Below are positions 11,628 to 32,623 of a stretch of 64,000 nucleotides of DNA, in pieces. The position numbers were made by a program, and so were the translations under genes. The notes beneath the pieces are model-generated. The model was not told where the DNA came from. It did no database searches and was given only the letters and a program-made list of their open reading frames with translations. How positions within the stretch are numbered: position 1 is the stretch's first letter; each line of letters begins with the position of its first letter. Source of the stretch: Obrimoposthia wandeli (lineage: Eukaryota). Location of the stretch: positions 1-64,000 of the forward strand of contig CDROCS010002858.1 in assembly GCA_977020255.1 (NCBI GenBank). The letters are read 5' to 3'.

Positions 11628-11671
11628 GATGTAATAGTGCGAGAACATACTTGCGATTACGGAGAAGACGA

Positions 11672-12964: not shown

Positions 12965-13139
12965 GGCTCTTGCTCATGGCATTCACATCAACATAGGCTG
13001 TCATGAGCATCACTGTGTACCTTTATTTAGCACTGAGAATACCTTTAATCGCTCTAAAAAGGCGCGTGCTGTATAGCACCACTTTTAGCTTATAAAATAA
13101 TAATCTGTTGAAAATCAGAAAAGCTATCGAGAAAATATA

Positions 13140-13841
13140 ATGATGACAAGAAAATTATTCGCACTGCTCATATTAATGACTCTTTGCGTAAAAACCAGTT
13201 TTGCCGCAGACATTGAAAACGGTAAAGTACTATTTCAACAATGCAGCATTTGCCACAACATTAGCCCACAAGGCGCAGCTAAAATAGGACCAAACTTATG
13301 GGGAACTATTAACCGCCCCATTGCGAATGAAGAAAATTACAGCAAACGATACTCTAAAGCTTTGGTAGGAGTAGAAGGCACTTGGAGCACTGTAAAGTTA
13401 GCTGAATTTATTACAAACCCTCAAGCATTCGCTCCCGGCACCATCATGGGCTTCGCGGGTTTTCAATCGGCAAAAGATCGCGCTGACATCATTGCTTTCT
13501 TAAACACTCAAAGCAGCAGTCCTATTGACTTGTCAGCTGATGTCACACAAAAAATAAGTGCGGCACAAGCATCGGCTCCTGTGATCAAAACACCTGCTAA
13601 TATTGGTAAGCTGTTTCGTGCGCCAGGTGCACAAAAAACATTTACCTATTGTAGTTCTTGCCATTCTGAACGCATAGTAACGCAGCAAGGTTTAACTAAA
13701 AGTGATTGGAAAGAACTACTTGAATGGATGGTTGATGAACAAGATATGGATGAGATTGCAGAACCTGATTACAGCTTAGTTATTGATTATCTATCAGTTA
13801 ACTATGGCGTTGATCGCCCTAATTTCCCAAAAAAGAAGTAA
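13140..13841 (+). CDS. Di-heme c-type cytochrome: cytochrome c2-like domain fused to a SorU-like domain
   Basis: Sec signal; CSICH...KIGPNLWG...PGTIMGFAG (c2 fold); Ala/Pro linker; CSSCHSERIVTQQGLT...WMVDEQDM...DYLSVNYG (SorU-like). Confidence 0.85.
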   Translation: MMTRKLFALLILMTLCVKTSFAADIENGKVLFQQCSICHNISPQGAAKIGPNLWGTINRPIANEENYSKRYSKALVGVEGTWSTVKLAEFITNPQAFAPGTIMGFAGFQSAKDRADIIAFLNTQSSSPIDLSADVTQKISAAQASAPVIKTPANIGKLFRAPGAQKTFTYCSSCHSERIVTQQGLTKSDWKELLEWMVDEQDMDEIAEPDYSLVIDYLSVNYGVDRPNFPKKK

Positions 13842-13930
13842 ATATATAGCGCTTAATATTTATAAAAAGTCATACGATTAAGTGCAATGCCTCTCTTAAC
13901 ACCGCAGGCATTAAGCTTAATCGCTAGGCT

Positions 13931-14737
13931 TTAAACACAAGGCTTCGCTTTTCGCGAGCTTCGTACCATCGCCATTTGTAGAAATTCAGGTGACCCAAAA
14001 CTCAAACTCACCTGCTCTACATAAGCGGCTATTCCTTTGAATCTTGATTGATCCATACCACTGGCAATGATTTGATACGCTTTACCATCGGCTTCCCAAT
14101 GGTATTGCTGTGCGTTACTGGCTTTCGAGTTTGTTGTATATAGTGGGTATTTTTTCTGTATTTTCAATGTTAATTTGCAACCGTTCACACCTCTATAGTG
14201 AAGAACTTTTGCGCTATTTGAATCTCGATATTGTAAGACCATGAATAAATTAGAAAGAGATAAATCAGGTGTAATGTCAGGCGAAAAATTCGCTACATCT
14301 TCCATCGCGTAAATGTTTTTTGGTATTACATCAATTTCTTTTTTTGATAATTGCTGATGCAATAGCTCTATCGCAGAGAAGTTCTGGGCTATTAGTTGAG
14401 GCTTTGTTTCTTGGGGTATTGAATAAATAAACATCACCATGATCAGTGATAGCGTAACCATCAACGGTTTATTGATACTTAAAAACACACTACCAACATC
14501 ATGAGCAAAATTGGCTAGTTTACGCGCATCCAAATGCTGTTTTTTCGTGATTGGCGCTAAGCTATTTGTATAGGTGCTAGCTACACTTTTTTTCAGTTGA
14601 TGTAAGCTAATATATACTTGCTGTAAATCGTCCTCAGTTTCTAGTCGGCGATATAATTTTTGCTTTTGCGTCAAAGATAATTCCTCATCAATTAACGCAT
14701 TTAGTAATTCAAAATCGGCTTCTGATATTTTCATCAA
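13931..14737 (-). CDS. Transmembrane anti-sigma factor
   Basis: N-terminal LNALIDEELS motif, a single TM helix and a periplasmic PDLS domain; directly downstream of an ECF sigma gene. Confidence 0.78.
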   Translation of the reverse strand: MMKISEADFELLNALIDEELSLTQKQKLYRRLETEDDLQQVYISLHQLKKSVASTYTNSLAPITKKQHLDARKLANFAHDVGSVFLSINKPLMVTLSLIMVMFIYSIPQETKPQLIAQNFSAIELLHQQLSKKEIDVIPKNIYAMEDVANFSPDITPDLSLSNLFMVLQYRDSNSAKVLHYRGVNGCKLTLKIQKKYPLYTTNSKASNAQQYHWEADGKAYQIIASGMDQSRFKGIAAYVEQVSLSFGSPEFLQMAMVRSSRKAKPCV

Positions 14738-14744
14738 TTCAGTT

Positions 14745-15248
14745 CTATTTAGATTTTTTTTCAGCTTGCATATGATCTAACATGCTCGCTCTAGCGCGGC
14801 TAATTCTACTCATCACAGTACCTAAAGCCAAACCGGTAATTTGAGCAACTTCTCGATATTTATATCCTAATACGTCAACCATGAATACAATTTCTCGCTG
14901 TTCTTCGTTTAAGTTGCTAAATGCTTGATTTATCGCATACTCATCTAACAGAACACACTGATCAACTTGATATTTTTCATATATTTGTTGTTGAACTGAA
15001 ACATACTCAGAGCGTAGTTTTTGCTTGCGAATATAATCAATATACAAATTTTTAAGCATACGAAAAACATAAGGCTTTAGCTCTGCTATATCTTGTGGCA
15101 CATCTTTAGATTCCAGCACTTTAACAAGCACTTCTTGTGCTAAATCTTCAGCCAAATGATGATCACTGCACATACCATAGGCATAAACCTTCAAATCAGG
15201 GGCAACCCTTTTTGCCAGCATTTTTGATCGTAAAAATCGTCTTATCAA
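14745..15248 (-). CDS. ECF-subfamily RNA polymerase sigma factor
   Basis: AEDLAQEVLVK (region 2), FRMLKNLYID, YKYREVAQITGLALGTVMSRISRAR (region 4). Alternative ATG at 15221. Confidence 0.92.
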   Translation of the reverse strand: MIRRFLRSKMLAKRVAPDLKVYAYGMCSDHHLAEDLAQEVLVKVLESKDVPQDIAELKPYVFRMLKNLYIDYIRKQKLRSEYVSVQQQIYEKYQVDQCVLLDEYAINQAFSNLNEEQREIVFMVDVLGYKYREVAQITGLALGTVMSRISRARASMLDHMQAEKKSK

Positions 15249-15526
15249 AGTAGAACCTTTATTTTTATTATCTAACTTTTGTTATATGTTTATAACGTAC
15301 AGATCATTATATTAACTGCAAACACATTACTTATTTTTATCCATTTTTTAAGATAAGTAATGTGCTCTACTTATTATTCATAAAGCTTTTATTTTACATT
15401 ACTTCTATTTAAAAACATGATTTAATATTAACAATACATTAATATTTTATTATTCTGTAAATAGTGATTCACCTGTATTGCTTCAATTTTTACCTCTTTG
15501 TAAATAGCACATTGTTTGGCGATTAT

Positions 15527-17281
15527 ATGAAAAGTATATTAGTTTCTTTACTCTTTTTACAAACTCTCTACTTCCCCGCTGTTGCTGACGACAAAGCAGC
15601 GTACAGAATTTTATACATCAATTCATATCATCGAGGCTATTCTTGGAGCGATGACTTAGAAAAAGGCATGACTGATGTCATTAACGCATCAGGGTTAAAA
15701 CATGAACTTTCAACTGAATACTTAGATAGTAAGCGGTTCGACTATAAACTTATCCAACAAGCTTTAATTAGCTCGATGAAAAAAAAATACGACCGCTACA
15801 AACCAGATATTATATTAGCCTCAGATAATAATGCTTTTAACTTTGTTAAAGCACACCGAGAAACCTTGTTTCCCAACATTCCTATCGTGTTCTCTGGCTA
15901 TAACAATTTCACCGCTGATGCTATTAAAGGCATGTACGATATTACCGGTGTAAATGAAAAGATCGATTTAACCTCTTTAACTAAAATGATCACCGCTATT
16001 CACCCTGACATCAAAGCGATTGCCTATATTGTTTCTGACGATTCAATCAGTAATAAAAACACTTACCTATCATCAATATCGGTATTTGAAAGCTTTAAGA
16101 AATCTTACCAAATAGAGGTATTACTAAATAAAACACAGCAAGAAATTGCCAGCATTCTAGCAACGCTACCTAAACAAACAGCCGTTGTTATTGCAGGGCA
16201 AACAGCGAATAAAGGGATAGATCGTGCATTTAGCCCTGGTGAACAAGCCGCTTTAATTGTCGACATAAGTCCATTTCCTACTTATACCCCTTGGAGATTT
16301 CATATTGATAACGGCGTAACAGGTGGCCGCATTTTATCAGGCTACGCACAAGGCTCGAAGATGGCAGAGTTAGCACTGCAAGTCGCACAAGGCACCCCTG
16401 CTAGTAGCATTCCGGTTATTTTAACAACGCCCACGCAAGATATTTTTCGCTATGACAAGCTCAAAGAATTTAATATTGATCTTGATTTACTCCCCACTAA
16501 CTCAATCGTTTTGAATCGGCCTCAACAAATTTGGGACAAATATAAATATGAGTTTCTATCGGTTCTTGCACTGCTTATATCTCAAATGATGCTAATTCTA
16601 GTTTTATTAGGGAACATTCGTAGCCGTAAACAAGCGCTGCAAAGCCTAGATATCGAGCGCTCAAGCTTAGAGACTAGAGTGCTAGAGCGTACTTGCGAGC
16701 TTAATAGCGCGAATAAAAAGCTTGAACGCTTATCGATGGAAGATAGCTTAACCAATTTAAAAAACCGACGCTTTTTAGACTCCTTGATAGAACAGGAATT
16801 AGAACAACTGGTTCATCACAATGAGCCACTGTCTTTGGTGATGATCGATATAGATTATTTCAAGCAATACAATGATATTTACGGCCATATTCAAGGAGAT
16901 AAGTGCCTGCAAGAAATCGCTGCTATTTTACTTAATTCGGTAACGCGCCCTCGTGATATTGCTGCACGTTATGGCGGTGAAGAATTCATGTTTATTTTAC
17001 CCAGTACTGATCAAGAAGGTGCTCGCAAAGTAGCAAATGACGTAAAGAATTGCATTCATGATCAAGCTATTCGCCATTCAGGCTCTCCCTTTAATAAGCA
17101 ACTCACAGTATCAATGGGAGTAGTCAGCATTCAAGCAGGTGCTGATATCAATTTCTCTCTCGGATCATTACTAACAATGGCCGATAGCAAATTGTATGAA
17201 GCTAAAAACGAAGGGCGAAACAGAATTTGCCAATCAGCCTTCTTACCGAACGCTGACACACGTCACCTATCAATAGTGTGA
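15527..17281 (+). CDS. Diguanylate cyclase with periplasmic ABC-SBP-like sensor domain
   Basis: Signal peptide MKSILVSLL (ATG 15527 preferred over 15464), ILYINSYHRGYSWSDD sensor, one TM, coiled coil, RPRDIAARYGGEEF (intact A- and I-sites). Confidence 0.9.
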   Translation: MKSILVSLLFLQTLYFPAVADDKAAYRILYINSYHRGYSWSDDLEKGMTDVINASGLKHELSTEYLDSKRFDYKLIQQALISSMKKKYDRYKPDIILASDNNAFNFVKAHRETLFPNIPIVFSGYNNFTADAIKGMYDITGVNEKIDLTSLTKMITAIHPDIKAIAYIVSDDSISNKNTYLSSISVFESFKKSYQIEVLLNKTQQEIASILATLPKQTAVVIAGQTANKGIDRAFSPGEQAALIVDISPFPTYTPWRFHIDNGVTGGRILSGYAQGSKMAELALQVAQGTPASSIPVILTTPTQDIFRYDKLKEFNIDLDLLPTNSIVLNRPQQIWDKYKYEFLSVLALLISQMMLILVLLGNIRSRKQALQSLDIERSSLETRVLERTCELNSANKKLERLSMEDSLTNLKNRRFLDSLIEQELEQLVHHNEPLSLVMIDIDYFKQYNDIYGHIQGDKCLQEIAAILLNSVTRPRDIAARYGGEEFMFILPSTDQEGARKVANDVKNCIHDQAIRHSGSPFNKQLTVSMGVVSIQAGADINFSLGSLLTMADSKLYEAKNEGRNRICQSAFLPNADTRHLSIV

Positions 17282-17468: not shown

Positions 17469-17511
17469 TAAGCATAAGTTATGACTAACGCACTATAATA
17501 ACTTATGCTTA
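17469..17511. promoter_or_regulatory. 14-bp perfect inverted repeat, candidate operator of the phosphoesterase/ABC cluster
   Basis: TAAGCATAAGTTAT-N15-ATAACTTATGCTTA, ending 73 nt before the ATG at 17584. Confidence 0.55.
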
Positions 17512-17583: not shown

Positions 17584-18393
17584 ATGTCGCATAAGGTTAT
17601 ATTAGTTATCCTCGATGGTCTTGAATACTCTGTTGGAGTGCAATGCATGGGTTTTTTGCAAGCATTACGCGAGCAGGACCAAGCGACCTTGTACAAACTG
17701 CAATGCGAGTTACCCTCTATGTCTAGGCCGCTCTATGAAGCGATTCTTACAGGTGTACCACCGGTTATCAGCGGTATAGTAAACAACAAAATCCAACGCC
17801 TTTCTAACCAACAAAGCGTTTTCAGCTTAGCAAGGTCTAACGGGTTAACCACAGCTGCAGCGGCCTATCATTGGTTCAGCGAGCTGTACAATCAATCTCC
17901 TTACGATGCAAAGCGAGATCGTTTCACTTCAGATTCTGACAAGGCTATTCAACACGGATGTTTTTATCATTTAGATCACTATCCTGATGATCATTTGTTT
18001 GCCGACGCCAATTGGCTGCTAAACAACCACGATCCTGATTTTTTATTAGTTCATCCTATGAACATTGACGATGCAGGGCACAAAGCTGGATGGGATAGTT
18101 CAAAATACCGCAATACCGCTCGAGCTGCTGATATTATATTGTCCGATTATCTACCTCAGTGGCTAGAACAAGGCTACCAAGTAATGGTTACAGCAGATCA
18201 CGGCATGAATAATGACCACAGTCACGGCGGCATATTAGCCGAAGAGCGCATGGTACCGCTCTATGTCTTAGGAGATGCTTTTACTCACGACAGCTCAGCT
18301 CAGCCTGAACAGCTGGAAATTTGCGGAACAATTTGCCAGCTACTTGGGCTACCTGCATCTGATAAACGCGTTGCCAGTAAGCTTCTAAAATAA
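17584..18393 (+). CDS. Alkaline-phosphatase-superfamily (NPP/phosphodiesterase-like) cytoplasmic hydrolase
   Basis: ILDG, LPSMSRP (nucleophile region), NIDDAGH, TADHG, HGG metal ligands; no signal peptide. Confidence 0.85.
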   Translation: MSHKVILVILDGLEYSVGVQCMGFLQALREQDQATLYKLQCELPSMSRPLYEAILTGVPPVISGIVNNKIQRLSNQQSVFSLARSNGLTTAAAAYHWFSELYNQSPYDAKRDRFTSDSDKAIQHGCFYHLDHYPDDHLFADANWLLNNHDPDFLLVHPMNIDDAGHKAGWDSSKYRNTARAADIILSDYLPQWLEQGYQVMVTADHGMNNDHSHGGILAEERMVPLYVLGDAFTHDSSAQPEQLEICGTICQLLGLPASDKRVASKLLK

Positions 18394-18483
18394 AAGTAAC
18401 TCAACACTAAAAAACAGGCTTTTAAGCAGCACTAAAGATCTTCTTTAATCTGCAGGCTAAAAATATACATTAGGATACAAAAA

Positions 18484-19152
18484 ATGGCATTGGCAATTTT
18501 TGATTTAGATGACACCTTACTGCGCGGAGATAGCGGATCGTTATTCTGCCAATATTTGGTCGATAAGAAACAAGCAGATCAATCTCTAATCGAAGGTGAA
18601 GTAGAAATTTTCAGCCATTACAGCTCACCCACCTTTGACATGGCCGATTATGTGCGTTTCGTTATAAAAACGATTGAACATTTAGACCAGCAGCAAATCG
18701 ATGACTTATTACCTGAATTTATTGAACATTACATCGCCCCTAACATATTCCCGCAAGCGCTAGAACTACTCAGTGAATTGCGCCGCAAGGGAGAGCGCAT
18801 CGTACTCATTTCAGCAACCACAGCGTTCATTGTTAAGGCGGTGGCCAACTACTTAAAAATAGAGGATGTGCTAGCAATTGAACTAGAGACCGAAACATCT
18901 GCTGTTAGCCAACGACTTAAATACACTGGTGAAATTAAAGGAGTTGCAAGCTTTAGAGCAGGTAAAGTGACGCGCTTACAGCAGTGGTTGGCTTTAACTG
19001 GAGAGAGCATAGAACAGGCATATTTTTATAGCGATTCTAGAAATGATCTGCCGTTATTAGAGTTGGTTGATAACCCTATTGCAACAAACCCTGATACTGT
19101 GTTGGAAAAACATGCAATTAGTGCCAATTGGCCAATAATTGATTGGCGGTAG
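18484..19152 (+). CDS. HAD-superfamily subfamily IB phosphatase
   Basis: FDLDDTL motif I, ISAT motif II, GK motif III, YSDSRND motif IV. Confidence 0.9.
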   Translation: MALAIFDLDDTLLRGDSGSLFCQYLVDKKQADQSLIEGEVEIFSHYSSPTFDMADYVRFVIKTIEHLDQQQIDDLLPEFIEHYIAPNIFPQALELLSELRRKGERIVLISATTAFIVKAVANYLKIEDVLAIELETETSAVSQRLKYTGEIKGVASFRAGKVTRLQQWLALTGESIEQAYFYSDSRNDLPLLELVDNPIATNPDTVLEKHAISANWPIIDWR

Positions 19153-19327
19153 CATTCAATCCAATGTTACTGTTAATAAACAGTTAGTTCACTCATATTT
19201 TTAAAGTTTAACAGATCGAATAAATAAAATAATGATCAACGTTTAAATGATAAGTTTTCGCGCAATACAGCAGGCTCTAATATTGAACCGGCTACTTGCT
19301 TCAAATAAAAAAAATAGGAACTCAAAC

Positions 19328-21382
19328 ATGAAGAAACTGCTAATAGTTGGCGCCTCGGTGCTAATGACGACAAACGTAATGGCGGCATGCCCTGCTGTCT
19401 CCGGTGCAGACGCTGGCGGAAAATACCCCCATCTTTTTGAGCGAGCTGAGTATGAGAGCGCTAAAAACTGTAAGATGGATTTTGCAGAAAATCCAATGGT
19501 TAAAGCACTGAACAAGCGTATTGCTGGTAACCCAGAGCTACTACCTCTTGCTTCTCGTATCCCAAGCGAACCTTTGGTTATTGCCCCTTATAAGTCGATC
19601 GGTAAATACGGCGGCACTTTAGATGGCATATCAAAAGCAACTGAATCAGGCACCTCAGATCTACTATCAGTTCGCCACGTTAACCTGACCCGCTATAGCG
19701 ATGATTTACAAACAATCGTTCCTAACGTAGCCAAGTCTTGGACTTGGAACGATGACTATACCCAATTGACCGTTAGCTTGCGTGAGGGCCATAAGTGGTC
19801 TGACGGCAAGCCATTTACAGCACAAGATATTATCTTCTGGTACGACAACATGTTGATGGATGTCAACATCATCAAGAAACCTAAAGATCGTTTTCTATCT
19901 GCTGGCAAGCCGATGAAAATCGAAGCTATTGACGCCACCACAGTGCGCTTTAACTTGAATGCACCTAAACCCGGTTTGGTAGCAATGTTTGCGCAAGATT
20001 ACGCACAGCCCTTTCAACCTAAGCATTTACTTGAAAAGTTTCACCCTAAGTTCAACAAAGATGCGGACAAGCTTGCGAAAGAGTTAGGCTTTGACAATGG
20101 TTATGCTGTAATAAACTTCTATTATGGTCAATCTGACTGGAAAGATGTTCCCACTCCTTTACTCAAGGACAAAGCCGCTTCAGATCGTTTAGTGGCAAAG
20201 GGTTACACAGCTGTCGCTCCTAGTTTAGAGTCATTTATAGTAATTGAAGAAAGCTTAGAGCGCCGTCGTTTAGTCGCTAACCCATACTTCTTTCAAGTGG
20301 ATACAGCAGGTAACCAGTTACCGTATATCAATGAAATTAGCGAAGTTTACATAGGCGATGAAGACATTCAGATTGCGAAGATGATTGCCGGTGAAATTGA
20401 CTACAAGTCACAAGCGGTAAGTTTACCTTCTGCACCTGTACTGTTAGAGAACAAGGCTCTGGGTAAATACTCTATTGCCTTACGACCACAAGTCAGCCAA
20501 ACCACCTACGCTTTTAACATGACAGATAAAGACTTGGAAAAGCGGGCTATCTTTAACGATATCAATTTCCGTCGTGCCATGTCAGTGGCCATTGATCGTA
20601 GTAAGATTAATGAAATTGCCTTCTTTAACTTAGGCAAACCTAACCAATATACTGCGATTGACGCAGATACTGCACCTTTCATTACTGATGAGTTAAGAAC
20701 CAGCTGGATACAGTTCGACCCAGCACTGGCGGCTAAATTACTCGACAAAGCAGGCGTGTTAGATAAAGATAATGACGGTGTACGTGAACTGCCATCAGGC
20801 AAAAAGTTTGAGCTAACATTTCAGTATGCATCTCAAGCATCTCCCACTGAATTAGTTGAAATTATCGCATCTAACTGGACCAAGGTAGGTATTAAAACCT
20901 CTATTAAAGAAATCACCAGTGATGAGTACCGTAACTCTCAAAGTGCCAATGATTTGAGCGTACTCTCTTGGACAATGGGCCGACCTTTGCCGGCTATCGC
21001 TACAAAGACTGAAGATGTTTTACCCCCTTATGGTACTTTCTTCGATCTGCGTACTGGTATGTTATGGGATCAATACAAGACCACCAACGGTGCAGAAGGT
21101 GTAGCACCTCCAGCAACAGTCGCTGAGATGGAGAAACTTGCCAACAAGTTTATCTCTCTGAAAATAGGCTCTGATGCTTCCAACAAAACCGGTTTAGAGA
21201 TGGTGAAAAGAATAGTTGATGACCTCTTCATCGTCGGAACTGTTAAAGCGGTTAGTCCGATTTACTACAGCCAAAAGCTAGGTAACTTTGAAGTCCAAAA
21301 AACTCACTCTTACGATTACTATTGGGTTTACCCTTACTTACCCACTCAATGGTATTTAGATGAGAACGGTGTTGCTCAGTAA
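19328..21382 (+). CDS. ABC transporter substrate-binding protein, family 5 (Dpp/Opp-like)
   Basis: Signal peptide MKKLLIVGASVLMTTNVMA (ATG 19328, AGGA RBS); IGKYGGTL, KWSDGKPFTAQD, VDTAGNQLPYI, FRRAMSVAIDR. Confidence 0.9.
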   Translation: MKKLLIVGASVLMTTNVMAACPAVSGADAGGKYPHLFERAEYESAKNCKMDFAENPMVKALNKRIAGNPELLPLASRIPSEPLVIAPYKSIGKYGGTLDGISKATESGTSDLLSVRHVNLTRYSDDLQTIVPNVAKSWTWNDDYTQLTVSLREGHKWSDGKPFTAQDIIFWYDNMLMDVNIIKKPKDRFLSAGKPMKIEAIDATTVRFNLNAPKPGLVAMFAQDYAQPFQPKHLLEKFHPKFNKDADKLAKELGFDNGYAVINFYYGQSDWKDVPTPLLKDKAASDRLVAKGYTAVAPSLESFIVIEESLERRRLVANPYFFQVDTAGNQLPYINEISEVYIGDEDIQIAKMIAGEIDYKSQAVSLPSAPVLLENKALGKYSIALRPQVSQTTYAFNMTDKDLEKRAIFNDINFRRAMSVAIDRSKINEIAFFNLGKPNQYTAIDADTAPFITDELRTSWIQFDPALAAKLLDKAGVLDKDNDGVRELPSGKKFELTFQYASQASPTELVEIIASNWTKVGIKTSIKEITSDEYRNSQSANDLSVLSWTMGRPLPAIATKTEDVLPPYGTFFDLRTGMLWDQYKTTNGAEGVAPPATVAEMEKLANKFISLKIGSDASNKTGLEMVKRIVDDLFIVGTVKAVSPIYYSQKLGNFEVQKTHSYDYYWVYPYLPTQWYLDENGVAQ

Positions 21383-21398
21383 CAGCTAAAATAGTTTT

Positions 21399-21425
21399 GG
21401 GGGGAGGTAAAACTCCCTCTTTTTC
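21399..21425 (+). terminator. Intrinsic terminator/stem-loop after the SBP gene
   Basis: GGGGGAG-GTAAAA-CTCCCTC followed by TTTTT. Confidence 0.65.
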
Positions 21426-21704
21426 ATACCTATTTTTCACCTATAGATAACGTCTGTTTAGCTTTAGCTAAATGTGACTTAAAATTAGTAACTCTACCTA
21501 ACAATTTGCTACCCCGAACAATGAATAATCAAATTCAATTGCGATACGTAAAATTTTAATGCGTGTTGTAAAGCTAGGTTGTGTCGGACGACTCCGATAT
21601 CGCTAGAAAACCACAATTTCTACTCTATTCTAGACATTAATAATAATTTGAGAGCTACTGCGTTGGTGCAACTGTCAACGTAAGCGGCTTCGGAGAACTG
21701 TATT

Positions 21705-22889
21705 TTGATTGCCAATTTTTTTTCTGAAACCTGGTTACTGTGGGTGCTGATTACGGTCGCTGCACTATTCTATTGGCGTGGACTAACTAGCCAATACTTC
21801 AGCTACGTACTCAACCGCTACCTACTAGCACTTACCACCCTATTGATGGTGAGCGCGATTGTGTTCTCCTTGATGGAAGTACTACCCGGCGATTGCGCAG
21901 AGAAGTATGTCGCCTACAAAAGTACCCAAGGCGAGAGCATTACACAGGCAGATATTGATGCTGAGCGAGCACGTATGGGCCTTGATAGACCACTGGTAAT
22001 ACGCTGGGCTAAATGGGTTAGTAATTTAGCGCTAAAGGGCGATTTAGGATTCAGTTGTGCCAAACGTCAATCTGTTAACTTAGCTCTGGGCGATCGCTTT
22101 TGGATGAGTTTTTGGTTTTGTATGGCCGGTTTGTTTTTTTCATACCTTATTGCTATTCCTTTCGGCATTTTATCGGCTTTCAGCATCAATAAAACTTGGA
22201 CTGATAAAAACCCACAAAATACTAAAAAAGAAAGATTCATCAACAGCATAGGGTTAAGCTTTAATAAGTTCCTTGATCTACAGCTACGAATTGTCAGCTA
22301 CTTAGGACTCGCACTCCCCAATTTCCTATTAGCACTGTTTATTATATTACTCTACGTATTTGCCGGAGAACCCGCCCCAACCGGCCTCTTCTCTGATGAA
22401 TGGCGCAACGTTCCTTGGTTCGGTGCCAACGGTTTTGAGTTTGACAAACTTTGGGATTTCTTTGGCCATGTTTGGCTACCTATTTTTGTTATTGGCTGGT
22501 CAGCAACCGCACTGCAATTACAAACGGTACGTGCGCTAGTCGTAGATGAGTCAAATAAGCTATACGTTGATGCCGCTAGAGCACGCGGAGTAGATGGCAT
22601 GGCCTTATGGGTAGGCTACCCAGTGCGCCACTCTATAAGCCCGCTATTTAACAGTGTCGGGTTCGATTTTCAGCGTGTATTTAACGATTTACCGATAGTC
22701 GCAATTGTTATCGGCTTAACTGATGCAGCAGCTCTATTAATTGAAGCATTAGCACTGACCAACGACCAAGAATTGGCGGCGGGTATTTTATTCTTAGTAG
22801 CGTTAGTGGTGATTTCAATGAATTTCGTTACCGACGTAGTATTGGCGGCAATAGATCCGCGTGTACGTATTAGCGTATTGGGGAGTTGA
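21705..22889 (+). CDS. ABC transporter permease (DppB/OppB-like)
   Basis: LPGD, MGLDRP, GDLGFS, LALPNFLLA, YVDAARARG (EAA loop). Confidence 0.88.
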   Translation: MIANFFSETWLLWVLITVAALFYWRGLTSQYFSYVLNRYLLALTTLLMVSAIVFSLMEVLPGDCAEKYVAYKSTQGESITQADIDAERARMGLDRPLVIRWAKWVSNLALKGDLGFSCAKRQSVNLALGDRFWMSFWFCMAGLFFSYLIAIPFGILSAFSINKTWTDKNPQNTKKERFINSIGLSFNKFLDLQLRIVSYLGLALPNFLLALFIILLYVFAGEPAPTGLFSDEWRNVPWFGANGFEFDKLWDFFGHVWLPIFVIGWSATALQLQTVRALVVDESNKLYVDAARARGVDGMALWVGYPVRHSISPLFNSVGFDFQRVFNDLPIVAIVIGLTDAAALLIEALALTNDQELAAGILFLVALVVISMNFVTDVVLAAIDPRVRISVLGS

Positions 22890-24139
22890 ACATGAGGATA
22901 AGCCAATTTTTAACTAAGTTTGGTCGCAAGCCAAAAGAAGAATCAACTGAGTCTTATTATACCGCAGGGCAGCTATCGCTAATCAAAGATAGATTCAAAA
23001 GTAAAATATCTGGCGTAGTCGCTGGGTGGATTCTTTTCATGCTGATTTTCATGAGCTTCTTTGCGCCGTTCTTTTCACCTTCTGACCCTACTATTAATGG
23101 TGCTGATACCGAATACAGGCGTGGGTCACCCCAATGGATTCACTTCAGTGATGACAATGGCTTTTCACTGCGTCCTTTCGCTTATACATACACCAAAGAA
23201 AAAGCTGGGTTTGATTTAAAATCGCTAGCATCGGGAGGCTTAGCGGCATTAGATGCGCTAACCTCAAGTGATGCGCTGAGTTCATCAAGTCAAAACAAGT
23301 ATATTATTGATGAAGAAAAACGACGCTATATACAATTTTTTGTAAAAGGCTGGGAATACAGCATAATCAATTTGAGCTTTAGTGATTTCGATTTAGATTT
23401 ACGCTGGGATAGACACTTAATGGGGGTAGAACAAGGGCAACTTCATTTAATGGGCACCGACGAAGACGGCAAAGATGTTTTTAGCCGCTCTTTACATGCT
23501 ATTTGGGTTACCATTAGCATCGCGGTCGTCGCGTTAATAGTGAAGCTGTTTTGCTCGTTATTAGTCGGTGGCGTCAGTGGTTATTTTGGTGGTCGGGTAG
23601 ATGCTGTCATGATGAGCTTTACGGAAGCGGTGCGCGTTATTCCTCCTATTCCGATATATCTGGCCTGCGCGGTAGCACTCGCTGAGATTGATTTGACCTC
23701 AGTGCAACGATACTTTGCCATTGCCGTAGTCATAGGTGCTTTAGACTTTGCAGCTCTAGCACGACGCTTACGCACGCACATTTTAACTGAACGTAATCAA
23801 GATTACGTACTGGCAGCGCAACTTTGCGGCTCAAGTACTTGGCGTATTATTTGGCGCCATTTAGTACCAAGTTTTGGCAGCTACATTATCGTCGACACCT
23901 TGATCAACTTCCCTTACGTTATTTTAGCGGAGACTAGCTTGAGCTTTCTAGGTTTAGGATTAACCGAGCCGGTAAACAGCTTAGGCGTGCTACTACAAAA
24001 AGCTCAAGACCCTGATATTCAGCAGAATATGATTTGGCAATTTTTTCCAGTACTTTTATTTGTACTGTTAATTATGGCTTTTGTTTTTGTTGGCGACGCA
24101 TTGCGCGATGCAGCAGATCCCTATGCGGAGAAAAACTAG
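22886..24139 (+). CDS. ABC transporter permease (DppC/OppC-like)
   Basis: LMGTDEDGKDVFSR, SGYFGG, DYVLAAQLCG, HLVP, SLSFLGLG. Confidence 0.9.
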   Translation: MNMRISQFLTKFGRKPKEESTESYYTAGQLSLIKDRFKSKISGVVAGWILFMLIFMSFFAPFFSPSDPTINGADTEYRRGSPQWIHFSDDNGFSLRPFAYTYTKEKAGFDLKSLASGGLAALDALTSSDALSSSSQNKYIIDEEKRRYIQFFVKGWEYSIINLSFSDFDLDLRWDRHLMGVEQGQLHLMGTDEDGKDVFSRSLHAIWVTISIAVVALIVKLFCSLLVGGVSGYFGGRVDAVMMSFTEAVRVIPPIPIYLACAVALAEIDLTSVQRYFAIAVVIGALDFAALARRLRTHILTERNQDYVLAAQLCGSSTWRIIWRHLVPSFGSYIIVDTLINFPYVILAETSLSFLGLGLTEPVNSLGVLLQKAQDPDIQQNMIWQFFPVLLFVLLIMAFVFVGDALRDAADPYAEKN

Positions 24140-25825
24140 ATGAGCGAATCTCAGAGCAATTTGCTCGATATAAAAAATTTAACCATCGATTTTAATACCG
24201 ACGAAGGCTTGGTCCATGCCGTTAGAGATGTCAGTTTAAATGTACGCCCAGGTGAAATAATGGGCTTGGTTGGCGAAAGTGGCTCTGGTAAATCGGTAAC
24301 CGCCAAAACGATTATGCGGCTAAACCCGAGCAATGCCATTATTCAGCACCCAAGCCAAATTAATTTTAATCATCAAGATCGTGATATCAATGTGCTAAAG
24401 CTACGCGGTAAAGATTTGAGTGTCGTGCGTGGCGGCGCGGTTTCTATGATTTTTCAAGAGCCTATGGCCAGTTTCGCGCCTGCGATTAAAATCAGTGATC
24501 AAATCATCCAAACCATGCAAATCCACTTAGGATTGGATAAAAAAGAAGCACGTAAGCGTGGCATAGAACTGTTTGAGCGTGTTGGTATCGCGATGCCAGA
24601 AAAACGCTTTGATCAATACGTGTTTGAATTATCTGGCGGTATGCGCCAGCGTGCGATGATCGCGATGGCGCTCTCAACTAAGCCCAAGCTACTTATCGCT
24701 GATGAGCCGACCACAGCTCTAGACGTTACTATTCAGGCTCAAGTGCTAGAGCTGATGTTAGAACTGCGTGAGCAATATGGTATGGCTATGTTGTTCATTA
24801 CCCACGATTTAGGTGTTATCTCTAAAATAGCTGATCGCGTCACTGTAATGCAAAAAGGCCAAGTAGTTGAAGCAGGCACCGCTCAAGAAGTACTGTTTTC
24901 GCCGCGTCACGAATACACCAAAAAACTGTTAGATGCTTTACCTCATCTTGATGATTTGCCGCCGCCTCCAACATATGTGCAACCACCATTGGTGAGTGTA
25001 GAAAACCTGTCGGTCGCTTATAAATTTTCTAGTGTAGGTCGCGGTTCTGATAAATTTATCGCAGTGAAGAACATTTCACTCGATCTACCTAAAGGCCAAA
25101 TTATTGGTTTAGTGGGCGAGAGTGGCTCAGGCAAAACTTCGTTAGGAAAAGCGATGTTAGGTGCATCCCCCATTAGCACAGGTCAAGTTACCTATCATCA
25201 AGACAAAGAAGACTTAGTGTTCGGCGCTGACAAATCCTTTCAGCGTAAAGAGCTATCCAAAATAGCTCAGTTAGTTTTTCAAGACCCTTATAGCTCGTTA
25301 AACCCTAGATTGACCGTGCGTGACATTATTGCTGAGCCATTAGAAGCAATGAAGCTCACTAGCAGTCGAGAAGAAACTGATCAGCGAATAATCGAAGTAG
25401 CACGCCAGTGTCATGTTGATGTCAGTCACTTACGCCGCTTTCCTCATGCCTTTTCTGGAGGTCAGCGCCAACGTATCAGTATTGCAAGAGCACTGGTTTG
25501 CAAACCACAGTTTATTGTTGCCGATGAATCTGTTGCTGCCTTAGATGTCTCAATTCAAGCAGAAATACTTAAGCTGCTCAAATCTCTGCGCGATGAGCTA
25601 AACCTAACAATTCTCTTTATTTCTCACGACTTAAGCGTGATTGCAAACTTATGCGATCGAGTCTGTGTTATGCGCTACGGTGAGCTTATTGAGCAAGGTT
25701 CTGTGCGTGATATTTTTCTTAATCCCCAGCAGAGCTACACCCAGCAACTTATCTCCTCTATTCCGTTATTAGAATCTAGTACAAGCCTAACAAAAAAGCC
25801 TGTGCAAGAACCTATATCGTCTTAG
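24140..25825 (+). CDS. ABC transporter ATP-binding protein with two ATPase domains (DppD-DppF fusion)
   Basis: Two Walker A motifs ([16 protein letters not shown]), signatures LSGGMRQR and FSGGQRQR. Confidence 0.93.
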
Positions 25826-25850
25826 CATGTTAAAACGGTGATGATGCTTA

Positions 25851-26750
25851 ATGAATATAACGCTTAGTGAAATTCGCAGTTTTCACGCGCTGGTTAAGTT
25901 TGGCAGCTTTACACTCGCTGCCAAACATTTAGGTGTTAGCCAGCCTGCTATCACGGCCCAAGTACGTCGTCTTGAAGCGCGCACCAAACAAATGTTACTT
26001 GAGCGCTATCACAAAGAAGTAAAGCCAACTGAATTAGGCCTACAGTTATATAGCTTAAGCTGCGAGTACATCTATTTGGATGCCGCTGTGGATGAGCTAT
26101 TTAGTATTGAAGCACAAGTTGAAGAGTTTCAGTTACGGGTAGCCACGGCCTCCCCTATTATCTTTATGCCACTAATGGCGGCCTTTAGAAAGCATTACCC
26201 GCATGCGCGATTACAGGTTATATCAGGCACTACTGATGACTGTCGTATGGCGGTGATGAACCGCGAGGCTGATATCGGCTTATTTCCGATGTATGATGCG
26301 CCTCAAAGTATTGAAAGTATGGCTTTTCATAGCCATCATTTAGTGGCAGTACTCAACCCCAATCACCCACTGGCGGGTGCTGATTCTGTTGATATTAGCG
26401 AATTAAGCCAAGAATCTATCATCGCGCATAAACCTACAGCTTATACGCAGATGTATGCCAATAGGCTGCTAGCAGATCGAGGTTTTACACCGAATATTGA
26501 AATGGAAATGGGCATGTCTGAGCACGTATGTAATGCCGTAACGCTAGGCTTAGGTATAGGATTTAGTTTAAGCGATGATATTAGAACAGATAATAGCCGA
26601 TACAGCTTAGTTCCGATTGAAGGCGAAACAGATGTGATTGAACATGTCTCGTGGTTACGCTTACACAGTAAAAAACGCGGTATTGCAGAGTTTGTAAAGC
26701 TAGCAAAAGCACACAGCACACTCTGGTCAGAGAGTACTGAGTCCTCTTAA
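25851..26750 (+). CDS. LysR-family transcriptional regulator
   Basis: GSFTLAAKHLGVSQPAITAQVRRLE HTH and a C-terminal substrate-binding domain. Confidence 0.93.
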   Translation: MNITLSEIRSFHALVKFGSFTLAAKHLGVSQPAITAQVRRLEARTKQMLLERYHKEVKPTELGLQLYSLSCEYIYLDAAVDELFSIEAQVEEFQLRVATASPIIFMPLMAAFRKHYPHARLQVISGTTDDCRMAVMNREADIGLFPMYDAPQSIESMAFHSHHLVAVLNPNHPLAGADSVDISELSQESIIAHKPTAYTQMYANRLLADRGFTPNIEMEMGMSEHVCNAVTLGLGIGFSLSDDIRTDNSRYSLVPIEGETDVIEHVSWLRLHSKKRGIAEFVKLAKAHSTLWSESTESS

Positions 26751-26797: not shown

Positions 26798-28813
26798 TTA
26801 TTTTTGCTTATCTAATTCATCACTTAATACTTGCTCTAACAAAGGCCTGCCCCACAGGTAGCCTTGCCCAAAGTCACAATTAATTTCTTCCATGTATTCG
26901 CTTTGCTCAATATCTTCTATACCTTCAGCGACTACTTTGAGTGACAGTGCTCCAGCCATTTTCACAATAGCATCAACTAATGAACGGTGGTCTTGGTTTT
27001 CACTAATATTTTTTATAAAGTATCGGTCTATTTTTATATAAGTAAATGGGTATTTTCGTACATAAGAAAGCGAAGAAAACCCGGTACCGAAATCATCTAT
27101 GGCGAGCTCACACCCCAAATTTCTGATTTTATATAGATTATTAAATATGACGTCATTATCTTCCATCATGCCCGACTCAGTAATCTCAACTGTAATAGCA
27201 CAGGGGGACACGTTGTTTATTTGTAAAAAGTGTAGCAAATCATCATAGAATCTTTCTTCTGCTACCTGTATCGGAGATACATTAATAGCCAGCCTAAGTT
27301 TAGGATCTAACTCATGCATTCTTGTTAGCGCTTTAAATGCCTCTTCTATGACGAATGCGCCTAATGCGGGTATTTGGCCTGTTTCTTCTGCTATAGCAAT
27401 AAACTCATCAGGATACAACGCACCTAATTTCTCGTTATCCCATCGCACTAAGGCTTCACAAGCCACTACTTTCTTATTACTCATGTTAACAATGGGCTGA
27501 TAAACCACATAAAAACCGCGCTTATTTTCAATATCGGTGCGCATTTCATTTGTTATGTTGGTTCTTCTTACCAGTGTTTGACCTAGCTCTTCGTTATAAA
27601 GACAAACACAACCACTACCTTGAGATTTCGCTTCAAACATTGCCATATCTGAGTGAGCTATTAGATCGAGCGCTTTGGTACCATCTTGCGGATATTGACA
27701 AATACCAACACTGGCTGAAATATAAACACTGCACTCTTCTATAAAATACGACTCACATATTTCATTAATGATCTGCTGGGCATAATGAAGAATATTCGCT
27801 TTTGCTGATTCATTGCGCACGATCAGTAAGAACTCATCCCCTCCTAACCTAGAAATCACATCTCCTTTAGCTTCATCTACATAGCCTTGAATACGCCTAG
27901 CGCACTCTCTAAGCAAGCTATCACCTACTTTGTGGCCATAGGTATCATTAATTTGTTTAAACTTGTCTAAATCAAGAAATAGAACAAAAAAACTATCGCC
28001 GTCTTGATCTTTTTTTATACTACTATTCAAATGATTTATAACGAATTGGCGATTAGGCACTCGTGTTAAATAGTCATGATTGGCTTGGTAAATAAGCTTC
28101 TTTTCTGTGCTTCTTTGCTCGGTAACATCTGTAAACACAGCACAAATTCCACCACCGGCTAAATAATAGCGATGTACTTGTATGACTCTACCGGTAGGGG
28201 GATACAAATCTTCAATCGCGACCATACGTCGTGTGCGAATCACATCAATATGATGCTGTGCGATGGCGCCTGGGTCTCCTGGGCCAAACACTCCCAAATT
28301 TGCAATGGCACGATAAGCATCCAACAATGAAACACCTGCTCTATTGAGCTCTGGCGGGAACACGCCCATTTTCGCATACTGTGCATTTATCTTGACCAGT
28401 ATTAGATTTTCATCATAGATCGCGATGCCTTGGTCTATAGCATCTAGCGTGACGCTGAGTATTTTCTGATACTTATCATCTTCTAGCTCTGTTGCTGTAT
28501 TACTAACATTTAATGGAAAAAATGACATGATACAGCCATTTTCTTCAGGATTTATTGACACTCTAAAATGAAAATTACTATTGACTGGAAAAGTAACCGA
28601 GCACTCAGCATAACTGCCTTTAATAGCAGTAAGTACGGGCTCTTTTAAAGTTAAATATAAATCGTCTTCCATTATATCAGCGATATTTCGCCCTAAAATA
28701 TCGCTAACACCTAGCCAAATTTTAAACGCTTCACTCGTTGCTAGTACTGTGCCCGAAGAGTCTATTGCCACTATATTTGCTGGAATATTATTTAATGGAT
28801 GATAATTTTTCAC
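26798..28813 (-). CDS. PAS-PAS-GGDEF-EAL c-di-GMP enzyme
   Basis: PAS_7-like LDAIDQGIAIYD; RLGGDEF (no RxxD I-site); CEALVRW and DDFGTGFSS. Confidence 0.92.
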   Translation of the reverse strand: MKNYHPLNNIPANIVAIDSSGTVLATSEAFKIWLGVSDILGRNIADIMEDDLYLTLKEPVLTAIKGSYAECSVTFPVNSNFHFRVSINPEENGCIMSFFPLNVSNTATELEDDKYQKILSVTLDAIDQGIAIYDENLILVKINAQYAKMGVFPPELNRAGVSLLDAYRAIANLGVFGPGDPGAIAQHHIDVIRTRRMVAIEDLYPPTGRVIQVHRYYLAGGGICAVFTDVTEQRSTEKKLIYQANHDYLTRVPNRQFVINHLNSSIKKDQDGDSFFVLFLDLDKFKQINDTYGHKVGDSLLRECARRIQGYVDEAKGDVISRLGGDEFLLIVRNESAKANILHYAQQIINEICESYFIEECSVYISASVGICQYPQDGTKALDLIAHSDMAMFEAKSQGSGCVCLYNEELGQTLVRRTNITNEMRTDIENKRGFYVVYQPIVNMSNKKVVACEALVRWDNEKLGALYPDEFIAIAEETGQIPALGAFVIEEAFKALTRMHELDPKLRLAINVSPIQVAEERFYDDLLHFLQINNVSPCAITVEITESGMMEDNDVIFNNLYKIRNLGCELAIDDFGTGFSSLSYVRKYPFTYIKIDRYFIKNISENQDHRSLVDAIVKMAGALSLKVVAEGIEDIEQSEYMEEINCDFGQGYLWGRPLLEQVLSDELDKQK

Positions 28814-30426: not shown

Positions 30427-31263
30427 TTATTTGTAAAAAACAGGTTTAAAAGGCCATAGATAGACACCAATAAACAGACACATAGCGGCGACCACCACAG
30501 AAGGCCCTGCTGGAGTGTCAAAATGAAATGAGGCAAATAAGCCAAGCAATACTGAAATACTGCCAATTACTGAGGCGAGTATTGCCATTTTTTCAGGCGA
30601 ATCACTTAACGGCCTAGCCGTTGCAGCAGGTATTATCAGCAACGATGTAATCAGTAAAACACCCACAATTTTCATCGCCACCGCAATGACCAAAGCAATC
30701 ATTAGCACTAACAGTAGCTTCATTCTGGCAACAGGCACGCCTTCCACTGCTGCTAACTCTTCGTTAATAGTCGTGGCTATCAAGTGTGGCCAGTTTTTAT
30801 AAAGTAATAATAAAATTAATGCGCCACCCCCTGCTATCCAAATCAAGTCTACTGGCAAAACGGCAAGTAAATCACCAAATAAGAAGGCCATCAGATCAAT
30901 GCGTGCATCTTCTAAAAAAGACATTGTCACTAACCCTAAAGACAGAGAGCTGTATGACATAATGCCAAGCAAAGTATCTGTGGCTATGAAACGCTGTTTT
31001 TGCATAGCCACCAGCACTAACGCTAATATTAAACAAAAGACTATAATCGCTAAATTAAGGTTAACTTCTAAAAAAATACCAATAGATACACCAAATAAAG
31101 CACTGTGCGCTAAGCTATCACCAAAATACGACATGCGTCGCCAAACTACAAACGCACCCAGTGGCCCGGCTACAATCGCAACTCCCACTCCACCTAATAG
31201 CGCAAAAAGCAAAAAATCATATAGCATATTAGTGATTGCACTCCGATGTATGCTGATGCTCAT
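30427..31263 (-). CDS. znuB: Zinc ABC transporter permease
   Basis: GAFVVWRRMSYFGDSLAHSAL, VGVLLITSLLIIPAATAR. Likely start is the ATG at 31227. Confidence 0.93.
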   Translation of the reverse strand: MSISIHRSAITNMLYDFLLFALLGGVGVAIVAGPLGAFVVWRRMSYFGDSLAHSALFGVSIGIFLEVNLNLAIIVFCLILALVLVAMQKQRFIATDTLLGIMSYSSLSLGLVTMSFLEDARIDLMAFLFGDLLAVLPVDLIWIAGGGALILLLLYKNWPHLIATTINEELAAVEGVPVARMKLLLVLMIALVIAVAMKIVGVLLITSLLIIPAATARPLSDSPEKMAILASVIGSISVLLGLFASFHFDTPAGPSVVVAAMCLFIGVYLWPFKPVFYK

Positions 31264-32538: not shown

Positions 32539-32557
32539 TTGTTATGTTATAACTTTT
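32537..32557. promoter_or_regulatory. Zur box 1
   Basis: AATTGTTATGTTATAACTTTT; matches the TGTTATNNTATAACA-type Zur palindrome; lies between zur and znuA. Confidence 0.75.
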
Positions 32558-32585
32558 TATTGCAGGGCATATTTATTGATGCCAT

Positions 32586-32606
32586 AATTGTTATACTATA
32601 ACTTTT
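32586..32606. promoter_or_regulatory. Zur box 2
   Basis: AATTGTTATACTATAACTTTT, a near-identical copy 49 bp downstream. Confidence 0.75.
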
Positions 32607-32623
32607 TATATCAGGCAGTACTA

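Follow-up and report, generated by a model that had tools for sequence, protein, structure and literature searches.

The Agrobacterium acc operon (AccR, AccA, AccBCDE, AccF and AccG) is responsible for the uptake and catabolism of agrocinopine and agrocin 84 (PMC4526662). AccA, a family-5 substrate-binding protein (SBP), binds agrocinopine, which is a phosphodiester, and the operon also encodes a cytoplasmic phosphodiesterase, AccF, and a phosphatase, AccG, with a cleavage product serving as the effector of the regulator (PMC4526662). In logic and architecture, i.e., a family-5 SBP and ABC importer, a diesterase and a phosphatase in one regulated operon, this is the closest known system to the one considered here, which belongs to a marine bacterium and lies on contig CDROCS010002858.1 of the Obrimoposthia wandeli assembly GCA_977020255.1. 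The whole stretch that was analysed, positions 1 to 64,000 of the forward strand and referred to below as the window, has ~40% G+C and contains seven co-directional open reading frames (ORFs) on the + strand between positions 17584 and 26750, all of which were found as a preliminary description of this DNA had listed them. They encode a small cytoplasmic enzyme of the alkaline phosphatase superfamily (AP), a HAD-IB phosphatase (HAD), a family-5 SBP, two permeases, a fused double ATPase and a LysR-family regulator. The operon is a genuine and conserved system that is as yet uncharacterised, and comparative genomics supports the interpretation offered in the preliminary description. That the operon serves the import and hydrolysis of organophosphoesters in general we hold with good confidence; more cautiously, we favour an inducible uptake and two-step hydrolysis of esterified organophosphorus, likely an ester of aminoethylphosphonate (AEP) and/or phosphoethanolamine.

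The window operon has an architecture of the acc type, a likeness in organisation. As AccA binds agrocinopine, there is a precedent for phosphodiester uptake by a family-5 importer. The parts themselves differ. The window enzymes belong to the AP superfamily and to HAD-IB, unlike AccF and AccG, which we take to be a glycerophosphodiesterase-type and an inositol-monophosphatase-type enzyme, respectively; the regulator is a LysR and not a repressor such as AccR; the ATPase is fused, the SBP is ~180 aa longer, and the genomic link is to phosphonate catabolism rather than to opines. AccA is not among the PDB matches of the window SBP at E <= 1e-5.

Two other groups of described systems share some of these features. 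The AEP clusters (PhnR-PhnSTUV-PhnWX of Salmonella and the LysR-type AepXVW/AepP/AepSTU of Pseudomonas and marine bacteria) have in common with our locus the LysR nearest to TIGR03339, the presence of phnW, phnX, phnR, phn_DUF6 and phnS2/T2/U2 in orthologous loci, and the occurrence of the AP and HAD pair elsewhere in a PhnSTUV-like operon under a PhnR-like regulator; unlike these clusters, the window lacks a C-P cleaving enzyme. Known AEP importers use small PotD/AfuA-type SBPs or are MFS carriers, and we know of none with a family-5 SBP or with esterase or phosphatase partners. The known AEP transporters take up the free acid (PMC8316502); PMC9311074 is a further source on AEP transport. The UgpBAEC-UgpQ/GlpQ systems resemble the window operon in that phosphodiesters are imported by an ABC transporter and then cleaved by a cytoplasmic diesterase, and Pho-box-like elements in many orthologous promoters extend this likeness. 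Ugp has a family 1 SBP, a GDPD diesterase and no dedicated monoesterase, whereas the window has a family 5 SBP and a diesterase candidate of the AP superfamily.

One line of evidence for our interpretation is the conservation of gene order. A profile made from 14 SBP relatives gave 80 genomic loci with 10-kb flanks, which were scored by tblastn with the window proteins. In ~40 gammaproteobacterial loci from at least 12 genera, the SBP orthologue has AP directly upstream of it, with HAD standing between the two except in four cases; the SBP is then followed by both permeases and the ATPase, and in 34 loci LysR comes next. Among the hosts are Amphritea, Aliamphritea, Neptunomonas, Pontibacterium, Marinobacterium, Motiliproteus, Reinekea, Vibrio, Photobacterium, Psychromonas, an Oceanospirillales isolate and several metagenome-assembled genomes (MAGs). 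Its recurrence in ~40 genomes puts this gene order far beyond chance. The SBP tree has a gamma clade of 46 rows, 41 of which have AP and/or HAD next door.

The same pair of enzymes also accompanies an importer of another kind. The gene order in Providencia and Vibrio fluvialis is GntR, SBP_bac_6, AP, permease, permease, ATPase, HAD-IB. The GntR of this SBP6-type operon gives 266 bits with the PhnR model (cut-off 297), its SBP matches PhnS models only in NCBIfam, the permeases match best the PhnU/V models and the ATPase the PhnT2 model, and the HAD again matches TIGR01490 and the histidinol-phosphatase model. A metagenome scan with an AP profile gave 80 loci, ~65 of which are this GntR-SBP6-AP-HAD operon; five with enough flank are orphans. 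The preliminary description had stated that the AP and HAD pair usually travels with a PotD/AfuA-type transporter and a GntR/UTRA regulator, and this is what is seen in V. fluvialis, in Providencia and in the ~65 of 80 metagenome loci. Nor are AP and HAD distributed independently of ABC genes, as they are paired with one of the two unrelated importers in almost every locus examined. Because the same pair sits in two unrelated ABC operons, AP and HAD appear to constitute a module that needs an importer, the type of which was swapped, and the window looks like a transporter-swap variant. Members of the AP family are 63-81% identical (120 relatives among the matches listed). SBP6-linked genes stand on both sides of the midpoint root of the AP tree, and genes linked to the family-5 SBP form essentially one clade of 39 rows together with five orphans and one SBP6 row. 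This topology fits a single swap of the PhnSTUV-like importer and GntR for the family-5 importer and LysR, with the reservation that the direction of the swap is not proven by a tree rooted by midpoint. Orphan APs, which have neither HAD nor a transporter beside them, come from two metagenome contigs as well as from Zhongshania, a Piscirickettsiaceae MAG and Magnetovibrio (L083, L086, L087, L089 and L091 in all), and make up one clade nested among the genes linked to the family-5 SBP.

The AP gene (17584-18393, + strand) encodes a protein of 269 aa that scores 67.6 bits against PF01663 (Phosphodiest; threshold 23), with weaker Pfam matches to Metalloenzyme and PglZ. The protein has no signal peptide, and its N-terminus opens directly with the first strand and a metal ligand. 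Residues D11, S47, D162, H166, D205, H206 and H214 are invariant across 20 homologues. The Pfam score, the two-metal ligands with the Ser nucleophile, and the fold all place AP in the alkaline phosphatase superfamily. Its AF2 model (pLDDT 81) has NPP3 and Xac NPP as the top structural matches, followed by the phosphoethanolamine transferases MCR-1 and EptC and then by LtaS and sulfatases, all at ~14% identity; the Foldseek probability is 1.00 for NPP3, Xac NPP, MCR-1 and sulfatases, and the query-normalised TM score against NPPs is 0.6-0.7 at a length of 269 aa vs 380-390 for Xac NPP. The phmmer E-value of AP against the NPP entry 2GSN is just 1.2e-3. AP is thus predicted to be a phospho- or phosphono-diesterase with an NPP-like two-metal core.

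Two alternative roles of AP have to be considered at this point. With NPP3 and Xac NPP as the top structural matches and PF01663 as the top Pfam family, the operon could scavenge compounds of nucleotide type, AP cleaving a dinucleotide, a nucleotide-sugar or CMP-AEP and HAD acting as a nucleotidase. We consider this improbable: AP is just ~14% identical to NPPs and is devoid of the NPP inserts (269 vs ~390 aa), HAD is closest to amino-alcohol-phosphate phosphatases (histidinol phosphate, SerB) and not to nucleotidases, and no nucleoside-catabolism genes recur in the 80 loci. Alternatively, AP may cleave C-P bonds as a hydrolase of a new kind, related to PhnA but of minimal size; it would then act on an imported free phosphonate, with HAD in an auxiliary role. 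The phosphonate type of the regulators and of the alternative transporter would suit this role, PhnA (1EI6) is the top PDB sequence match of AP (1.6e-6), and the phosphonoacetate hydrolase model TIGR02335 is its sole NCBIfam match. Yet AP lies far outside this equivalog, scoring 26.2 bits against a cut-off of 407.55 over residues 5-69, the fold search places NPPs first, and such an activity would be redundant with PhnW/X or PhnY*/Z, which are kept beside many loci; we find a C-P hydrolase very hard to credit.

HAD (18484-19152, + strand; 222 aa) scores 114 bits against PF12710 and 144.2 bits against TIGR01490 (cut-off 98.3), which assigns it to HAD-IB, and the D7-x-D9, S/T, Lys and DSxxD motifs can be read in its translation. 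Together with the invariant residues of AP, these motifs bear out the earlier statement that the operon encodes two cytoplasmic hydrolases with intact catalytic motifs. With 212 bits against the 280 required for the Pseudomonas-type histidinol-phosphatase equivalog (NF052360 / HolPasePseu), HAD is, judging by its scores, a close paralogue of this enzyme outside the equivalog. The nearest PDB entries are 3FVV, which is uncharacterised, and then SerB. HAD is predicted to be a phosphatase for beta-amino-alcohol phosphates.

The SBP reading frame opens at 19247, yet the homologues align from M28, an MKKLL start at 19328. The SBP gene therefore occupies 19328-21382 on the + strand and encodes 684 aa, as had been proposed. 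The protein belongs to family 5 (PF00496, 197.8 bits vs a threshold of 32.4) and has the Opp/Dpp fold, and its hydrophobic N-terminus, MKKLLIVGASVLMTTNVMAAC, reads as a signal peptide of a periplasmic protein. Orthologues that are 50-83% identical are found across Gamma- and Alphaproteobacteria. The SBP matches no characterised family-5 equivalog among OppA, DppA, NikA, GsiB, Opp4A and CntA, the best of them being Opp4A with 105 bits vs 650. Among solved structures, it is nearest to SPH1118, which binds pectin oligosaccharides (2e-67), to 5IPW and to AgpA, a binder of alpha-galactosides. With SPH1118 and AgpA as the nearest solved relatives, the cleft comes from a sugar-binding lineage and not from the peptide binders OppA and DppA. 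Cys21 follows directly after the signal peptide (context VMAAC; Cys21 and Cys48 are encoded at 19388-19471), and both cysteines are invariant in 14 orthologues, which suggests either a lipobox, i.e., a lipoprotein SBP, or an N-terminal disulfide. Lipoprotein SBPs are unusual in Gram-negative bacteria.

Directly 3' of the SBP gene, the sequence and a terminator scan reveal a GC-rich hairpin followed by a T-run (21399-21420, + strand), which likely acts as a partial terminator and so shifts the ratio of SBP to permeases upwards. All genes downstream of it are likewise on the + strand. Permease 1 (21705-22889; 394 aa; PF00528, PF19300) is OppB/YejB-like with a long periplasmic insert; its gene has a TTG start with GGAGA ahead of it, and the protein is 76-90% identical in orthologous gamma loci. 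The gene of permease 2 (22886-24139; 417 aa; PF00528, PF12911), which is OppC/YejE-like, overlaps that of permease 1 by 4 nt. The ATPase gene (24140-25825) encodes a fused double ATPase of 561 aa with two ABC_tran domains and oligo_HPY. The importer as a whole resembles YejABEF, the microcin C/peptide importer, in its long SBP, in permeases with long periplasmic inserts and in the fused double ATPase; unlike the window operon, Yej systems have no phospho-hydrolase partners. The window importer also falls outside the YejABEF family by score. YejF (NF011713) is the top model of the ATPase at 540 bits, below its cut-off of 834, the permeases reach 59 bits vs 445 for YejB and 83 bits vs 439 for YejE, and the SBP has no YejA-specific match in NCBIfam.

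To characterise the neighbourhood of the SBP in other genomes, all ORFs of the 80 SBP loci were clustered and the representatives were scanned for families. An AP-superfamily esterase gene lies within 10 kb of 61 of the 75 SBP relatives; in the gamma clade this is the small AP, in the alpha and delta clades a phosphonate monoester hydrolase (PMH). The alpha-/delta-type SBP orthologues (50-61% identity) are not accompanied by AP and HAD; in 20 of their loci the SBP is adjoined by a sulfatase-family protein of ~510 aa whose best model is PehA. The Sulfitobacter copy gives 820 bits with PDB 4UPK, an entry deposited under the name of phosphonate monoester hydrolase, and 351 bits with RlPMH (2VQR), and 19 of the 20 copies contain the formylglycine motif in the form CGPSR or CSPAR. 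As partners of the alpha/delta SBPs, PMHs (PehA of Burkholderia caryophylli, RlPMH and SpPMH, with a formylglycine nucleophile) would be the functional analogue of the role proposed for AP, although the window AP is not itself a PMH: it has 269 vs ~510 aa, a Ser instead of a formylglycine nucleophile, and PF01663 instead of PF00884. The literature searched describes PMHs through their activity on phosphonate monoesters and does not name their natural substrate. A 2026 paper reports pmh beside phnWX in algal-associated isolates and discusses no transporter (PMC13608971).

The same loci connect the SBP with phosphonate catabolism. At least one dedicated phosphonate gene is carried by 22 of the 80 SBP loci (a count made on related genomes), in gene orders that vary. 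These genes encode PhnW, PhnX, PhnR, phn_DUF6, the TIGR03364 FAD oxidoreductase, PhnS2/T2/U2, a PhnY*-like hydroxylase and a PhnZ-PhnY* fusion; the recurrent neighbours PhnW (637 bits) and PhnX (318 bits) each score above the cut-off. In many roseobacter loci the PMH gene is directly upstream of the SBP gene, and a phn_DUF6-like EamA gene (134-142 bits, below the cut-off) is divergent. Some alpha loci add genes for a HisN-like IMPase (242 bits, cut-off 275), a Na/Pi-symporter-like protein and a glutamine-synthetase-like protein, and the same loci also carry an iron alcohol dehydrogenase, an aldehyde dehydrogenase and DeoR regulators. This set looks like one for amino-alcohol catabolism by gamma-glutamylation, the alcohol being released from the imported ester. 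Two unrelated histidinol-phosphatase-like enzymes accompany the transporter, HAD-IB in gamma loci and the IMPase-type HisN-like enzyme in alpha loci.

These neighbourhoods bear on the simplest objection to any joint function, namely that AP and HAD are unrelated housekeeping genes that happen to stand next to an importer for peptides or oligosaccharides. In its favour are the family-5 fold, the likeness of the ATPase to YejF and the oligosaccharide ligands of the nearest solved SBPs, and some AP homologues are indeed orphans. Mere juxtaposition nevertheless strikes us as highly improbable, given a gene order kept across at least 12 genera, the esterase genes near 61 of 75 SBP relatives and the pairing of AP and HAD with some ABC importer in almost every locus examined. 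No glycosidase recurs among the 80 SBP loci, and peptidase-like genes are confined to a few lineages (M20 in 2 loci, MlrC-like in 5), so that SBP homologues do not consistently sit beside peptidases or glycosidases. On both counts that the preliminary description had named as able to overturn it, the company of the SBP homologues and the joint distribution of AP and HAD with ABC genes, the outcome favours its interpretation. In addition, a LysR box is shared upstream of AP although the LysR gene follows the ATPase gene.

Several side observations concern paralogues and rarer neighbours of the SBP. A second SBP paralogue (71% identical) is present at L022:5859-15198 and L023:1105-13903, in MAGs whose SBP genes include the AP-linked copy as well; ahead of it stand genes for an M20 amidohydrolase, a 93-aa ORF and a TenA-like protein, and in L023 phnW, phnX and phnR come directly after it. 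This paralogue might take up an AEP conjugate with an amide link (N-acyl or peptidyl). At L037:266-1684 (- strand), a gene divergent from another SBP paralogue encodes a protein of 472 aa in which a PhnZ-like HD-domain oxygenase is fused with a PhnY*-like hydroxylase. Three delta-type and uncultured loci (L041, L042 and L045) have, upstream of the SBP and divergent from it, genes for a HisD-like dehydrogenase and a TIGR03364 (PbfD-like) FAD oxidoreductase; L042 and L045 carry the PMH gene after the ATPase gene, and the L041 sequence ends before that point. In six loci of Roseobacter and Stappiaceae (L056, L058, L064, L067, L071 and L072) the amino-alcohol-like set is upstream of the SBP with PMH, a 249-aa family-less protein and two DeoR regulators.

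The LysR gene (25851-26750, + strand) starts 25 nt after the ATPase gene. According to the preliminary description, its product resembles LysRs found next to aminoethylphosphonate genes, and this is borne out in part: the AEP-associated phn_lysR family, TIGR03339, is its top NCBIfam family at 167 bits, the next family being 60 bits lower at 107 bits, but the score is below the cut-off of 341.1, so the likeness stands and membership does not. Orthologous LysRs are encoded near phnWX in several loci. Upstream of AP there is a 13-bp perfect inverted repeat with arms at 17470-17482 and 17498-17510, each of which holds an ATAA-N7-TTAT box; the two inverted boxes (17469-17483 and 17497-17511, + strand), noted on reading the sequence, constitute the putative LysR operator. 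Such a box fits the T-N11-A type that is typical of LysR sites. Upstream of AP, ATAA-N7-TTAT occurs in 20 of 38 loci (37 orthologous ones and the window) vs 0.72 expected from shuffles, and a Pho-box-like match with <=4 mismatches in 30 of the 38 (window included) vs 9 in shuffles, both counts being inflated by the relatedness of the genomes. The nearest relatives, L001-L003, keep the same ATAAGCATAnnTTAT box as the window, with a second half-site after it. The conserved boxes upstream of AP lead us to propose that LysR controls the whole operon. The 13-bp repeat in its full length was rejected as a regulon-wide operator, as it has no further exact copy in the window and is not conserved in other loci; of this repeat, just the shorter ATAA-N7-TTAT box is conserved among loci.

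The Pho-box-like matches have their own pattern. About 120 nt upstream of AP, many orthologues have CTGTCAT-like 7-mers arrayed at a period of 11 bp, which look like tandem Pho boxes. Loci with such arrays are L013, L030, L032, L049, L027, L009, L063 and L025, an example being CTGTCATAAATCTGTCTT of L032; the array has 1 mismatch in L032 and 2 in L049. A Pho box in the window's own promoter was rejected, its best match having 4 mismatches and an implausible place. The window, L001 and L003 are without a convincing Pho-box array, and for this reason phosphate control may have been lost in the window lineage. Phosphate control would thus apply in many relatives and may not apply at the window locus.

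Taken together, the pairing of AP and HAD with importers, the AEP-type regulators and transporters, and the tie of the SBP to PMHs and to C-P cleavage are most simply explained by the import of an ester of an aminoethyl-P compound. According to the mechanism that we favour, the 684-aa family-5 SBP would capture the ester in the periplasm, and the two long permeases and the fused ATPase would import it. In the cytoplasm, the small NPP-like AP, with its Ser47 nucleophile and two-metal site, would cleave the P-O ester bond to yield an alcohol, perhaps glycerol, a sugar or another one, and either AEP or a phosphomonoester such as phosphoethanolamine, and HAD-IB would remove phosphate from the beta-amino-alcohol phosphate. 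Released AEP would be passed to PhnW and PhnX, whose genes are absent from the window and adjacent in many orthologous loci. LysR would bind the ATAA-N7-TTAT boxes upstream of AP and activate the operon in response to a product. Gene content, the conservation of catalytic residues and of synteny, and the genomic associations are observed, and the substrate, the order of the reactions, the inducer and co-transcription are the parts of this scheme that we infer. Among public reads, this DNA occurs in a single DNA data set, probably the source sample, and in no RNA run. Candidate substrates are deacylated head groups of phosphonolipids or phosphatidylethanolamine and glycan fragments with AEP or phosphoethanolamine. 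The preliminary description had proposed an Opp/Dpp-fold importer recruited for a bulky phosphodiester or phosphonate that is cleaved in two steps; comparative genomics supports the importer and the two-step cleavage, but not the word bulky, as the two enzymes also work with a PhnS-like SBP that has 350 aa, and SBPs of this size typically have small ligands.

A number of observations weigh against the aminoethyl-P part of this proposal or against the functional unit as such. As had been noted for phnW and phnX, neither gene is present in the window; tblastn likewise found no phnR, phn_DUF6, PMH, TIGR03364, glutamine-synthetase-like or HisN-like gene in its 64 kb. There is no phnW or phnX within 7 kb in the 80 metagenome AP loci, ~65 of which are of the SBP6 type, and AP and HAD may therefore fully mineralise a plain phosphate diester, the phosphonate link being due to the SBP family alone. 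If the substrate were a pure phosphonate monoester, there would be no need for HAD. The ligands of the nearest solved SBPs are oligosaccharides, either uncharged or carboxylated. The scores of LysR, HAD, the ATPase and the PhnR-like regulator are all under the curated equivalog cut-offs. Orphan AP homologues with 64-65% identity exist in Zhongshania, the Piscirickettsiaceae MAG and Magnetovibrio. Finally, the 22 loci with phosphonate genes come from related genomes and are not independent events. It is because of the lack of phnW and phnX at the metagenome AP loci and of the problem with the role of HAD that we grade the two levels of the proposal differently, with confidence in organophosphoester import and hydrolysis and an even balance of expectation as to whether the substrate carries an aminoethyl-P moiety, be it AEP or phosphoethanolamine.

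The strongest competitor follows from the same observations. The operon may import an ordinary phosphate diester with no phosphonate involved, e.g., glycerophosphoethanolamine, glycerophosphoserine, glycerophosphocholine, serine-ethanolamine phosphate or a sugar-phosphate diester, which AP and HAD would mineralise completely; the proximity of phosphonate genes and the kind of regulators would then reflect just the similarity of ligands and the clustering of phosphorus-scavenging genes. A diesterase followed by a monoesterase suits a phosphate diester exactly, the acc and Ugp systems are precedents, and the Pho-box-like arrays in 30 of the 38 loci as well as the missing phnW and phnX, both in the window and near the metagenome AP loci, agree with it. 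It accounts less well for the dedicated phosphonate enzymes that 22 of 80 SBP loci encode, which belong to several pathways and whose genes are arranged in different orders, for an alpha-type partner enzyme that belongs to the phosphonate-monoester-hydrolase class, and for PhnR-like and phn_lysR-like regulators and a PhnSTUV-like transporter whose best matches are AEP-specific families. On balance we consider a plain diester unlikely. The aminoethyl-P ester proposal may even be extended to two convergent importers of esterified AEP, one in gammaproteobacteria with the small AP and HAD-IB and another in the alpha and delta groups with the formylglycine PMH, both delivering AEP to PhnWX or PhnY*Z; this extension is tentative, and we regard it as possible rather than probable.

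In the sea and in soil, esters make up much of the organic phosphorus, and a large part of biogenic phosphonate is not free but bound to lipids, glycans or proteins. To our knowledge, the uptake step for conjugated phosphonates or phosphoethanolamine esters has not been described. The literature that we searched holds no description of the AP and HAD enzyme families, of the clade of 680-aa SBPs, or of the LysR with its boxes, and none of the interchange with the PhnSTUV-like importer or of the link to PMHs and AEP catabolism. If the extension to two convergent importers is true, a transporter family for conjugated phosphonates can be named, and PMHs gain a physiological class of substrates, natural phosphonate monoesters, i.e., head-group fragments of phosphonolipids and phosphonoglycans. 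The hypothesis joins a clade of small AP enzymes that is widespread and uncharacterised with its HAD-IB partner, two interchangeable ABC importers, PMHs and the PhnWX and PhnY*Z pathways, and the operon would offer a clean case of a transporter swap around a fixed enzyme module. Cultured hosts exist, among them Amphritea, Neptunomonas, Marinobacterium, Vibrio fluvialis, Providencia and roseobacters such as Ruegeria.

The genes that flank the operon are unrelated to it. Upstream, 11651-15248 encodes a molybdopterin oxidoreductase of the sulfite-oxidase type, a cytochrome c, an unassigned 268-aa ORF and an ECF sigma factor, and 15464-17281 (+ strand) a GGDEF protein with a periplasmic ABC_sub_bind domain. 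Downstream, a convergent PAS-GGDEF-EAL gene occupies 26798-28813 (- strand), so that c-di-GMP genes stand on both sides of the operon. A GGDEF-EAL gene (~36% identical) also comes after LysR in the Amphritea loci, and the upstream GGDEF gene has no counterpart elsewhere. Further downstream there are a MATE pump and, at 30427-33652, a zinc-uptake cluster of ZnuB, ZnuC, Zur (FUR family) and ZnuA, after which come genes for DUF1513 and imelysin (M75).

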